NCBI RefSeq assembly: GCF_964204645.1
Contig: NC_134029.1
Location: 2,046,001 to 2,110,000, forward strand
Reading direction: 5' to 3'
Source of the DNA: Tubulanus polymorphus
Lineage: Eukaryota; Animalia; Nemertea
DNA length: 64,000 bases
This document shows positions 67 to 64,000 of this stretch, piece after piece. Each line of letters opens with the position of its first letter. Positions within the stretch are counted from its first letter, which is position 1. The notes beneath the pieces are model-generated. The model had not been told where the DNA came from. It saw nothing but the letters and a program-made list of their open reading frames with translations, and ran no database searches. The position numbers and the translations under genes were made by a program.

Positions 67-258
67 CATGTAAACCGGCAAGTTGTCCAAAACGATGTAG
101 ATATGGTAAAATCAAGAAGTTCAAGCACAACTGTCGCATCAGCTGCAGATGCAGACCATGTAGAATGGCCAAGTGTCCATCCAAACGTCACTGTGGTTAC
201 CGTGGATTCGTAAGAAAATACAACAAACATGGATGCCGCAGAAGTTGCAAATGCAAAC
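67..258 (+). CDS. Exon with two antistasin-like modules (30 aa plus 34 aa [10 protein letters not shown] type)
   Basis: tttcag|CATGT...TGCAAAC|gtgtgt; 192 bp; [63 protein letters not shown]. Confidence 0.85.
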
Positions 259-63200: not shown

Positions 63201-64000
63201 AGATGCCCACGGTTCTGTGCTCATGGTTATATCAAAAAGAAGAAACACGGTTGCCGTATATCATGTCGATGCAAACGTAAGTGCTTTTAGGTTAATATAA
63301 TTATAATGAAGACGTGGTCTTTTGAAGTTTGAGTATAAAAATACAATTGGTTATTCTAGCATGTAAACCAGCTCCATGTCCACGCCGCTGCTACTGGGGA
63401 CGTATCAAGAAGTTTAAACGTAAATGCCGCATAAGCTGTAAATGTAGACCGTGTAGACCAGCCAAATGTCCAAGCCGCTGCCACTGGGGTAAAGAGAGGA
63501 AATATAGACATGGATGTCTGAGAAGATGTACATGTAAACGTAAGCATGCACCGCTATTAGGCCACAGTTGCCCAACCGTTGTATTGTTGTTTCAAACCTT
63601 TCTCTTAATTTGCAGCATGCAGACCTCGTAAATGTCCAAGAAAGACCAACTGTCATCTCAAAATAAAGAGAAAACATGGCTGTATTGTGGGATGCTACTG
63701 TAGAGGTAATTTTGCTTGTTTACAATGCAATTTTCATTTTAGATAAATTATATTCTTGAATGCAGTTCGATTCATGTATTTGCCGTTTTTTAGAATGCCG
63801 ACCTGCACGCTGTCCCAAATTCTGTAGATATGGCAAGATCAAGAAATATAACAAGTTCAAGTGCAGAACTCGCTGCAGATGTAGAAGTGGGTGTCTGACT
63901 TAACTTTTTTATATGATGAAGCTACCTAATCAAACAAACCAATTTACAAAAATACGTTTTTAACATTGATATAAATCTATTACCCATCTGTTTACAGTTT
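67..64000 (+). CDS. Giant multi-exon gene (partial at both ends) encoding a Cys/Arg/Lys-rich protein of tandem antistasin-like modules with 18 interspersed Kunitz domains
   Basis: About 240 exons bounded by AG|...|GT, phase 1-1 wherever checked. Exons in the first 6.6 kb: 67-258, 375-554, 670-945, 1054-1143, 1233-1424, 1549-1920, 2148-2237, 2344-2535, 2616-2705, 2785-3153, 3280-3459, 3586-3675, 3757-4026, 4120-4302, 4394-4558, 4655-4846, 4934-5113, 5189-5380, 5465-5554, 5645-5824, 5917-6108, 6226-6315, 6409-6588 (all 3n, 4227 bp). Last complete exon is 63794-63886 and a new exon opens at 63998. I saw no in-frame stops; third-position variation (TGT/TGC, AGA/CGT) supports this frame. Confidence 0.9.
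375..554 (+). CDS. Exon with two 30-aa antistasin-like modules
   Basis: ttacag|CGTGT...TGTAGAC|gtaagt; 180 bp. Confidence 0.85.
670..945 (+). CDS. Exon with three antistasin-like modules (32+30+30 aa)
   Basis: tgacag|CATGT...TGCAAAC|gtaatt; 276 bp; first module is the C-x6-C type (CADVRKSC). Confidence 0.85.
1549..1920 (+). CDS. Exon with four antistasin-like modules
   Basis: tcatag|CATGT...TGCAAAC|gtatgt; 372 bp. Confidence 0.85.
4394..4558 (+). CDS. Kunitz domain exon K1 (4 Cys)
   Basis: 165 bp; [54 protein letters not shown]; Kunitz WYY and FxWGGxxxNxNNFxxxxxCxxxC motifs. Confidence 0.9.
6608..10250. repeat. Recent tandem segmental duplication, copy 2
   Basis: Exon 67 matches 6674 and exon 3586 matches 10185; intron similarity decays after about 3650/10250. 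Confidence 0.9.
10981..11145 (+). CDS. Kunitz domain exon K2 (4 Cys)
   Basis: 165 bp; [43 protein letters not shown]...CRKRCV. Confidence 0.9.
11755..11896. repeat. (TA)71 microsatellite in an intron
   Basis: Uninterrupted TA dinucleotide run of 142 bp, ending about 16 bp before the acceptor of the exon at 11913. Confidence 0.97.
13004..13168 (+). CDS. Kunitz domain exon K3 (4 Cys, [10 protein letters not shown] subtype)
   Basis: 165 bp; [54 protein letters not shown]. Confidence 0.9.
15502..15666 (+). CDS. Kunitz domain exon K4 (4 Cys, divergent)
   Basis: 165 bp; [54 protein letters not shown]. Confidence 0.9.
18189..18353 (+). CDS. Kunitz domain exon K5 (4 Cys)
   Basis: 165 bp; [54 protein letters not shown]. 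Confidence 0.9.
22257..22421 (+). CDS. Kunitz domain exon K6 (4 Cys)
   Basis: 165 bp; [54 protein letters not shown]. Confidence 0.9.
25651..25815 (+). CDS. Kunitz domain exon K7 (4 Cys, [10 protein letters not shown] subtype)
   Basis: 165 bp; [54 protein letters not shown]. Confidence 0.9.
28259..28423 (+). CDS. Kunitz domain exon K8 (4 Cys)
   Basis: 165 bp; [54 protein letters not shown]. Confidence 0.9.
30412..30576 (+). CDS. Kunitz domain exon K9 (canonical 6 Cys, P1 Arg)
   Basis: 165 bp; [54 protein letters not shown]. Confidence 0.92.
33551..33570. repeat. (GATT)5 microsatellite in an intron
   Basis: gattgattgattgattgatt. Confidence 0.8.
33823..33987 (+). CDS. Kunitz domain exon K10 (4 Cys)
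   Basis: 165 bp; [54 protein letters not shown]. Confidence 0.9.
35561..35725 (+). CDS. Kunitz domain exon K11 (4 Cys)
   Basis: 165 bp; [54 protein letters not shown]. Confidence 0.9.
39139..39303 (+). CDS. Kunitz domain exon K12 (4 Cys, [10 protein letters not shown] subtype)
   Basis: 165 bp; [54 protein letters not shown]. Confidence 0.9.
40437..40680 (+). mobile_element. 218-bp intronic insertion with 13-bp TSD, 63-bp inverted repeat and 36-bp tail; probable 5'-truncated Penelope-like element remnant
   Basis: TAGTGTAACGATC at 40437-40449 and 40668-40680; 40450-40512 is the reverse complement of 40569-40631 (62/63 match); unpaired tail 40632-40667; the loop carries TGATGA-t-GATCT-n8-AGATC-GAAACGTC. 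Confidence 0.7.
43185..43349 (+). CDS. Kunitz domain exon K13 (4 Cys)
   Basis: 165 bp; [54 protein letters not shown]. Confidence 0.9.
45484..45648 (+). CDS. Kunitz domain exon K14 (4 Cys)
   Basis: 165 bp; [54 protein letters not shown]. Confidence 0.9.
45804..45855 (-). mobile_element. Possible degenerate SINE core fragment in an enlarged intron
   Basis: caggaactcatttactcctgggtggagagag resembles, from memory and not by search, the reverse strand of a conserved invertebrate tRNA-SINE core (…ACTCATTTA(TA)CxCCTGGGTGGAGAGAG…); host intron 45649-45910 is about 2.5x the usual length. Confidence 0.35.
46173..46625 (+). CDS. Exon with five antistasin-like modules, the first with atypical Cys spacing
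   Basis: tttcag|CATGT...TGCAAAG|gtaaat; 453 bp = 151 codons. Confidence 0.8.
47268..47432 (+). CDS. Kunitz domain exon K15 (4 Cys)
   Basis: 165 bp; [54 protein letters not shown]. Confidence 0.9.
54208..54675 (+). CDS. Largest exon seen: five antistasin-like modules (32+30+30+30+34 aa)
   Basis: cttcag|CGTGT...TGCAAAC|gtatga; 468 bp = 156 codons. Confidence 0.85.
56782..56946 (+). CDS. Kunitz domain exon K16 (4 Cys)
   Basis: 165 bp; [54 protein letters not shown]. Confidence 0.9.
59910..60074 (+). CDS. Kunitz domain exon K17 (4 Cys)
   Basis: 165 bp; [54 protein letters not shown]. Confidence 0.9.
62206..62295 (+). other. Non-canonical GC-AG intron
   Basis: The 90-bp exon 62116-62205 ends CAAAG|GCAAGT; the GC donor is needed to keep module length and phase; acceptor ttacag precedes Kunitz K18. 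Confidence 0.8.
62296..62460 (+). CDS. Kunitz domain exon K18 (canonical 6 Cys, P1 Arg)
   Basis: 165 bp; [54 protein letters not shown]. Confidence 0.92.
63794..63886 (+). CDS. Last complete exon in the window (one 31-aa module)
   Basis: ttttag|AATGC...TGTAGAA|gtgggt; 93 bp; next acceptor tttacag ends at 63997. Confidence 0.75.

Follow-up and report, generated by a model that had tools for sequence, protein, structure and literature searches.

The 64,000-nucleotide stretch of the Tubulanus polymorphus genome analyzed here (contig NC_134029.1, positions 2,046,001 to 2,110,000; hereafter the window, with positions counted from its first letter) is most likely the middle of one huge gene that would encode a secreted protein of more than 13,000 amino acids, built from small cationic disulfide-rich modules and scattered Kunitz domains. 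This reading is supported by an exon frame that crosses the window without a stop and by the long intronless frames of a relative, in which a single start, leading into a signal peptide, and a single stop were found; it upholds the single giant secreted polycation proposed in an earlier note made from the letters of this DNA alone.

Gene Model and Integrity of the Reading Frame

The exon model was obtained by splice-aware search with manual refinement, and database searches of the spliced model were run exon by exon. It comprises 240 exons on the plus strand (67 to 63886; Table 1), every one bounded by AG/GT, in phase 1-1 and with a length that is a multiple of three, and no stop codon occurs in any exon or junction codon. 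The coding total is 39,573 nt, that is, 13,190 codons (~1.58 MDa); introns measure 71–337 nt (median 92) and have 30% GC, compared to 46% in exons. The gene is open at both window ends, with an acceptor before position 67, a further acceptor at 63996-63997, and neither start nor stop inside. The module pattern was found 398 times on the plus strand, never on the minus strand, and never in ten order-3 Markov controls; minus-strand genes were rejected, the frames there being a shadow of the repeat without modules. The earlier note had described about 240 in-frame exons with no start or stop in 64 kb, ~370–400 modules with 18 Kunitz domains, an extrapolated ~13,000 residues, a net charge of several thousand positive units, and 1409 residues (44 modules and one Kunitz domain) in the first 6.6 kb; the spliced model agrees with all of these figures, the last of them matching its first 23 exons exactly.

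The window contains a recent internal duplication of 6,607 bp (Table 1). Between the two copies, synonymous divergence (dS) is 0.058–0.165 and nonsynonymous divergence (dN) 0.006–0.017, giving a ratio of 0.11, and the alignment of exons 1–13 with exons 24–36 contains eight gaps in introns and none in exons. Older block duplications (dS near 0.8–1.0) have dN/dS values of 0.07–0.10. The window gene is under purifying selection, with dN/dS of ~0.1, and the way identity decays between the recent copies is as expected from unequal crossing-over or conversion. An (AT)n microsatellite of ~75 units (11746-11896) lies in the intron after exon 40, near the end of the recently duplicated block. Seven introns, starting at 15667, 28424, 37989, 50065, 55881, 57247, and 60672, have lengths of 3n without an in-frame stop; their retention would preserve the frame, as would skipping of any of the symmetric exons.

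The near-identity of this duplication is also what could be held in favor of the view that the window does not contain one gene at all, being instead a small-gene cluster, a pseudogene, or an assembly artifact, as the 6.6-kb repeat may be an uncollapsed haplotype. Even if the duplication were false, however, no more than 44 modules would be lost, and dN/dS is ~0.1 in the old duplicates too. A cluster of small genes is unlikely because the largest intron is 337 nt, no hydrophobic start exon occurs in the window, and poly(A) hexamers in introns are at chance (37 vs. 34 expected); moreover, in the 13,137 codons of the relative's contigs there is just a single start and a single stop. Taken as a whole, we regard this explanation as extremely improbable.

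Table 1. Features located in the window, in window coordinates
Feature	Position	Strand	Evidence and remarks
Most likely the internal part of one multi-exon gene	67..63886	+	240 symmetric phase-1 exons; 398 putatively antistasin-derived cationic modules; 18 Kunitz domains
Exon with longer module class (spacing 4-5-13-3-1, 47 copies)	67..258	+	N-x-x-G-C motif kept
Two-module exon, commonest class (Cys spacing 4-3-11-3-1, ~290 copies)	375..554	+	Predicted beta-hairpin per module
Exon beginning with 6-3-11-3-1 module class (15 copies)	670..945	+	
First of 16 four-Cys Kunitz exons, P1 Lys or Arg	4394..4558 (165 nt)	+	Kunitz_BPTI E 2e-19; alignment
Four-Cys Kunitz exons, 2nd to 8th (starts)	10981, 13004, 15502, 18189, 22257, 25651, 28259	+	
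Four-Cys Kunitz exons, 9th to 16th (starts)	33823, 35561, 39139, 43185, 45484, 47268, 56782, 59910	+	
Six-Cys Kunitz exon, P1 Arg	30412..30576	+	Pfam; alignment
Second six-Cys Kunitz exon, P1 Arg	62296..62460	+	Alignment
Recent 6,607-bp internal duplication, introns included: visible part of first copy	1..4564	+	95.6% identity to 6608-11151; dN/dS 0.11
Second copy of the duplication	6608..11151	+	Five exons 100% identical to first copy, then identity declines to 79%

Composition and Charge of the Modules

The 398 modules of the window are distributed at one to five per exon, and each has exactly six Cys. The predicted protein contains 2592 Arg and 2098 Lys (4,690 residues, 36% Lys+Arg) vs. 61 Asp+Glu, for a net charge of ~+4,630, together with 2,464 Cys (18.7%) and 602 His; Ser and Thr make up only 4.4%. 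An average 30-residue module presents six Cys, a charge of ~+11, ~2.2 aromatic residues, and 1.4 His, and 380 of the 429 Tyr residues adjoin a Lys or Arg. The modules are hydrophilic, with no hydrophobic stretch, and are joined by linkers that are two residues long in 379 of 379 cases, with Pro as the last residue in 294 of them and 13 being dibasic; furin-type sites number 22 in 13,000 residues. The typical module given in the earlier note holds as a consensus, with no verbatim occurrence in the window. Module types recur as a higher-order unit around Kunitz exons. A stretch without a Kunitz domain (62 modules, 47549-56696) includes a region at 49000-53100 in which exons are largely single-module and the sequence is more varied, and which is collinear with two contigs of the relative described below (L002 and L011).

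Because every module carries six Cys in an antistasin-type pattern and the protein is probably secreted, these residues are expected to form disulfides. This bears on the idea of a metal-binding or mineral-templating matrix acting through Cys and His or through the polycationic surface, which would make use of the abundance of both residues and would be in line with a weak metallothionein match (below cut-off) and with the metal binding proposed for a mussel byssal antistasin protein (PMC9382459). The expected disulfides speak against it, however, as does the near lack of acidic residues for calcium, and we consider this role very unlikely. Membership among metallothioneins or keratin-associated proteins was rejected in view of the fixed six-Cys pattern and secretion, and a protamine-like nuclear protein by the relative's signal peptide and VWD head.

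Probable Antistasin Ancestry and Loss of the Inhibitory P1

The earlier note had assigned the modules to the antistasin family on the basis of their Cys spacing and a G...[N/D]xxGC motif. The canonical antistasin spacing (4-3-10-2-1) occurs in none of the 398 window modules, most of which are 4-3-11-3-1 and all of which have three residues between the fourth and fifth Cys, so the claimed match in spacing fails; the [N/D]xxGC motif is present in 65 of 398 and missing from the rest. The Pfam Antistasin search (PF02822 / I15) proposed in the same note gave 11–15.6 bits for window exons (best E 0.022), all below the 21.2-bit cut-off. The residue directly after the second Cys is antistasin's protease-specificity (P1) position; antistasin has Arg there (PDB 1SKZ alignment), and 392 of 398 window modules have Pro.

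The ancestry itself is supported by terminal modules of the relative, which bridge the two patterns. Its first modules grade from 4-3-10-2-1 through 4-3-12-2-1 and 4-3-12-3-1 to the dominant 4-3-11-3-1, two modules have canonical spacing, and the terminal modules, with no others, pass Pfam Antistasin (22.4–38.5 bits). The last module matches antistasin 1SKZ (E 1e-5), a bridged profile matches gigastasin (PDB 5UBM, E 6e-5), and in a search with a predicted model of the bridging pair, the top seven chains belong to the antistasin family, although every E-value is weak. The AlphaFold model of the window modules has one hairpin per module (predicted local distance difference test score, pLDDT, 89); a Foldseek search with this model did not retrieve antistasins. 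Descent of the window modules from antistasin is therefore supported at the level of sequence, as the earlier note had held, and what does not survive is Pfam membership and the inhibitory P1.

Described members such as gigastasin, Hydra antistasin, and the Theromyzon cocoon protein share with the window a six-Cys module with a C-terminal hairpin, which in the window is predicted, and gigastasin also joins its two modules by a two-residue linker, as do the tandem modules here. They differ in spacing, P1 residue, and charge, which is extreme in the window, and in copy number, with 2–6 modules in described multi-domain members (PMC12838937, PMC7851590) vs. ~400. Because of the Pro at P1, the two-residue linkers, and the failure of both spacing and Pfam cut-off, the window modules would be structural; the usual rule would not class them as inhibitors, and their arrangement does not favor release.

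Kunitz Domains

The Kunitz assignment of the earlier note is secure as to family: Kunitz_BPTI (PF00014) scores of 69.8 and 71.2 bits lie far above the cut-off of 21, and there are 139 PDB relatives. The 18 domains are single-exon, one per 22 modules on average, and all have a basic P1 (10 Lys, 8 Arg). The three disulfides typical of the family are another matter, as 16 of the 18 have four Cys, with the second (II-IV) disulfide absent and Gly at position II. This disulfide stabilizes the Kunitz binding loop (PMC2740865), although BPTI lacking it was reported to be native-like in shape and still to inhibit trypsin, and four-Cys Kunitz toxins exist (PMC4065081). The window domains thus resemble the four-Cys (sub-Kunitz, conkunitzin-like) type, scoring at 70 bits with a Lys or Arg P1, and differ from Kunitz/BPTI inhibitors in sitting singly, each with a charge of ~+14, among structural modules of a megadalton chain. 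A likely, albeit uncertain, role for them is that of protease guards of the chain.

A basic P1 in every Kunitz domain would also suit a polyprotein precursor from which protease inhibitors, anticoagulants, or venom-type peptides are freed by proteolysis; secretions of this kind often contain antistasin and Kunitz folds, and four-Cys Kunitz toxins offer a precedent (PMC4065081). The Pro P1 of nearly all modules (392/398), the two-residue linkers mostly ending in Pro, and the 22 furin-type sites in 13,000 residues speak against release, and a precursor of this kind would not be expected to carry a mucin-type head, making this role improbable.

With the Kunitz profile, the sole matches were P0001, which belongs to a different gene with many Kunitz domains in another animal (L014), and a sea anemone inhibitor. 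L014 (ENA ERZ26052378) was rejected as an orthologue. This separate animal gene has no cationic modules; at 3300-19900 it carries at least a dozen Kunitz exons in a row, with sequences resembling the six-Cys type of the window.

A Probable Orthologous Gene with a Mucin-Type Head

A metagenome scan with the module profile yielded 13 contigs, all from the Joint Genome Institute (JGI) assembly Ga0123379, presumably a Gulf of Mexico seawater metatranscriptome. The contigs, analyzed separately as L001–L013, are intronless, with 70–79% DNA identity to the window, and are single open frames of 378–2,425 residues (13,137 codons in total) in which 372 modules, falling into the spacing classes of the window, and 12 Kunitz domains, some with four and some with six Cys, were counted. 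Window exons have a mean identity of 69% to them (Kunitz exons 68–87%), and module order is common to the window and most contigs beyond shuffled controls, an excess to which shared higher-order units contribute; for L002 against window 48.4–51.9 kb, the module-order score is 7.6 vs. 2.2 ± 0.4 in shuffled controls. A start occurs in just one contig (L009), and a stop with a 3' untranslated region in just one (L012). We infer that the 13 contigs are transcripts of one orthologous giant gene.

The relative has 21% Lys, 13% Arg, and 6.2% Tyr vs. 16%, 20%, and 3.7% in the window, with nearly equal total charge. This swap of Lys and Arg at near-constant charge suggests selection on charge and not on the residue. 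A seventh Cys, a possible inter-chain cross-link site, was seen in a few scattered modules of L009, L010, and L012.

L009 opens with a hydrophobic signal peptide, followed by VWD (Pfam E 3e-26), C8 (1e-17), TIL (8e-5), a vWC-like part, and one EGF-like domain; it has a single VWD unit, a GDPH motif, and no C-type lectin, and after this head come 58 modules and two Kunitz domains in the same frame. L012 ends with a canonical antistasin module and then a 77-residue basic tail with one unpaired Cys, for which a Pfam search gave no match and no cystine knot was detected; this tail (L012:4440-4675) is Trp-rich and possibly represents a new small domain or a dimerization site. We infer that the window's gene has the same head and tail.

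In PDB comparisons, the head ranks FCGBP best, then VWF and mucins, and its nearest database relatives are zonadhesin-like proteins of chiton, mussel, scallop, oyster, and octopus (40–45%); identity to Theama adhesion protein 1 (Tmed-ap1) is 39%. In a quick tree it groups with mollusc zonadhesin-like proteins and Tmed-ap1 in a spiralian clade (Shimodaira–Hasegawa-like approximate likelihood ratio test, SH-aLRT, 97), loosely among the mollusc sequences (88) and not as sister to ap1. Among 93 head relatives, none carries any of the modules. Four mollusc zonadhesin-like proteins with the same head (P0009, P0038, P0057, and P0058) have poly-Lys, Lys/Ser/Pro repeats, or Arg/Lys-rich WSC domains.

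Proposed Function and Alternatives

With moderate confidence, and by analogy, we propose that the protein, of titin-like size and from a marine spiralian (probably lophotrochozoan) animal, serves as the cationic cohesive scaffold of a secreted glue, mucus net, tube lining, or egg case. The options raised in the earlier note included an antimicrobial mucus or surface barrier, an adhesive or envelope component, and a counter-ion for polyanions, and the VWD-C8-TIL-EGF head of the relative favors the adhesive and mucus ones. In the proposed mechanism, the head and the tail Cys would link chains, as in mucin/FCGBP-type proteins, and the folded modules would form a beaded filament, stapled by disulfides and kept in gland vesicles in a condensed state together with polyanions. 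Once released, the filament could bind sulfated or acidic glycans and negative surfaces (sand, shell, biofilm, cells), with added cohesion in seawater from cation-aromatic contacts, which are known from mussel proteins to work at seawater salt. The Kunitz domains would slow trypsin-like attack on a chain that, at 36% Lys+Arg, is otherwise an ideal trypsin substrate.

Mlig-ap1 of the flatworm Macrostomum lignano, a precedent, combines the same head type with a Lys/Arg-rich part of more than 3,600 residues; adhesion depends on it, and heparin blocks it (PMC6410801), and Tmed-ap3 contains 1,931 Lys+Arg (PMC9229212). This VWD head type is found in limpet pedal-mucus proteins (PMC7333891), and antistasin-like repeats are in structural use in a leech cocoon protein (PMC7851590) and are also known from the footprint proteins of sea stars and from one byssal protein of a mussel (PMC9382459); in the leech cocoon and the sea star, limpet, and mussel adhesives, there are few copies each.

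By analogy, Mlig-ap1 is the closest functional analogue. Like it and the split ap1 and ap3 of Minona and Theama, the protein would be secreted, with a VWD-C8-TIL(-vWC)-EGF core and thousands of Lys/Arg (PMC6410801, PMC9229212, PMC6745481). The flatworm proteins hold their charge in low-complexity GRK(HS) repeats within 3,600–3,700 aa, whereas the window has 4,690 Lys+Arg, in a partial sequence, on ~400 folded disulfide modules; Mlig-ap1-type proteins also have a C-type lectin and 17–19 EGF domains, whereas L009 lacks the lectin and the long EGF array and carries Kunitz domains. With FCGBP, zonadhesin, gel-forming mucins, and mollusc zonadhesin-like mucus proteins, the relative shares a signal peptide, a VWD-C8-TIL head with GDPH, giant size, and one unpaired C-terminal Cys, whereas FCGBP, zonadhesin, and mucins have three or more VWD units and the relative one, with no cystine-knot tail detected. 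Gel-forming mucins also have a Pro/Thr/Ser glycosylation domain, which the window protein lacks (Ser+Thr 4.4%), being polycationic instead of polyanionic. The protein would thus work like a cationic cohesive secretion protein without being, by defining features, an ap1, a mucin, or an antistasin inhibitor, and is best read as a mucin-like scaffold with a folded polycation in place of the anionic sugar brush. The combination of a VWD head and a polycation seems, from these sequences, to have arisen repeatedly in spiralians. More tentatively, the window's protein may define a charge-inverted mucin, a new class of animal biomaterial protein with a VWD head on a folded polycation of >1.5 MDa and >+4,600 and with built-in protease guards. 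It would act as an electrostatic glue or as a net for catching particles, and its properties would be tuned through the expansion of exons and perhaps through exon skipping that leaves the frame intact.

Several points weigh against the scaffold reading. The head and tail are present in the relative's contigs, outside this window, and the head tree is a quick version without annelid, brachiopod, phoronid, or nemertean sequences. VWD heads of this kind are likewise present in proteins of sperm and egg coats, and in mucus that does not adhere. The cationic regions of the flatworm proteins are low-complexity and unfolded, making the analogy functional only, and most of the Kunitz domains lack the loop-stabilizing disulfide, which leaves the guard role uncertain.

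The FCGBP-type head would also suit an antimicrobial barrier at the surface, in which many cationic beta-hairpin modules, anchored in mucus as a multivalent array, would trap or damage microbes; the module (+11, 30 residues, three disulfides, predicted hairpin) resembles cationic defense peptides in bulk properties, and limpet-mucus antistasin/WAP proteins were proposed to be protective (PMC7333891). The modules are hydrophilic with no hydrophobic stretch, however, no linkers are suited to release, and selection is strongly purifying, not diversifying. We consider this doubtful as the principal function, and compatible with the scaffold as a second role. A reproductive matrix (egg capsule, egg-mass jelly, cocoon, spermatophore, or sperm acrosome scaffold) is, if anything, slightly less probable still: the head is zonadhesin-like, and protease inhibitors are common in egg coats, but the nearest characterized head is that of an adhesion protein. 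The leech cocoon protein made of antistasin-like repeats counts in its favor (PMC7851590).

Novelty and Significance

A search of 1.84 billion representatives with the module profile gave no match, which is a weak blank because the same filter missed known Kunitz domains in L009 and L004; a five-module exon gave six candidates, none significant, in a 5.8-billion set. Window modules found nothing meaningful among PDB sequences and folds, prokaryote genome and viral collections held no relative, Rfam gave none, exact look-ups of the frames of the window and of the relative had no hit, and no description of this architecture was found in the literature searched. A folded ~400-module megadalton polycation is new as far as these searches reach, and they are weak for such biased sequence. 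Each domain is known singly, and the VWD head with a polycation is already known from flatworms. The earlier note's statement that no such protein had been described stands in that none was found, and is qualified by the flatworm Lys/Arg-rich adhesion proteins, a known functional analogue that makes the novelty somewhat lower.

The gene represents a real and conserved family of proteins, extreme in both size and charge and apparently not described so far, in which an inhibitor fold would have been turned into a structural polycation through loss of the reactive site and ~400-fold exon duplication. Such proteins are nearly invisible to standard workflows, as they are cut to pieces in trypsin proteomics, masked by the composition filter of HMMER, and broken up in short-read data. 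From a practical perspective, the 30-residue module offers a simple test unit for underwater adhesives and polyanion binders. The protein would also be an independent route to the flatworm-glue design of a VWD head plus polycation, and such independence would support the idea that these glues arise from mucus proteins via Lys/Arg enrichment (PMC6745481).

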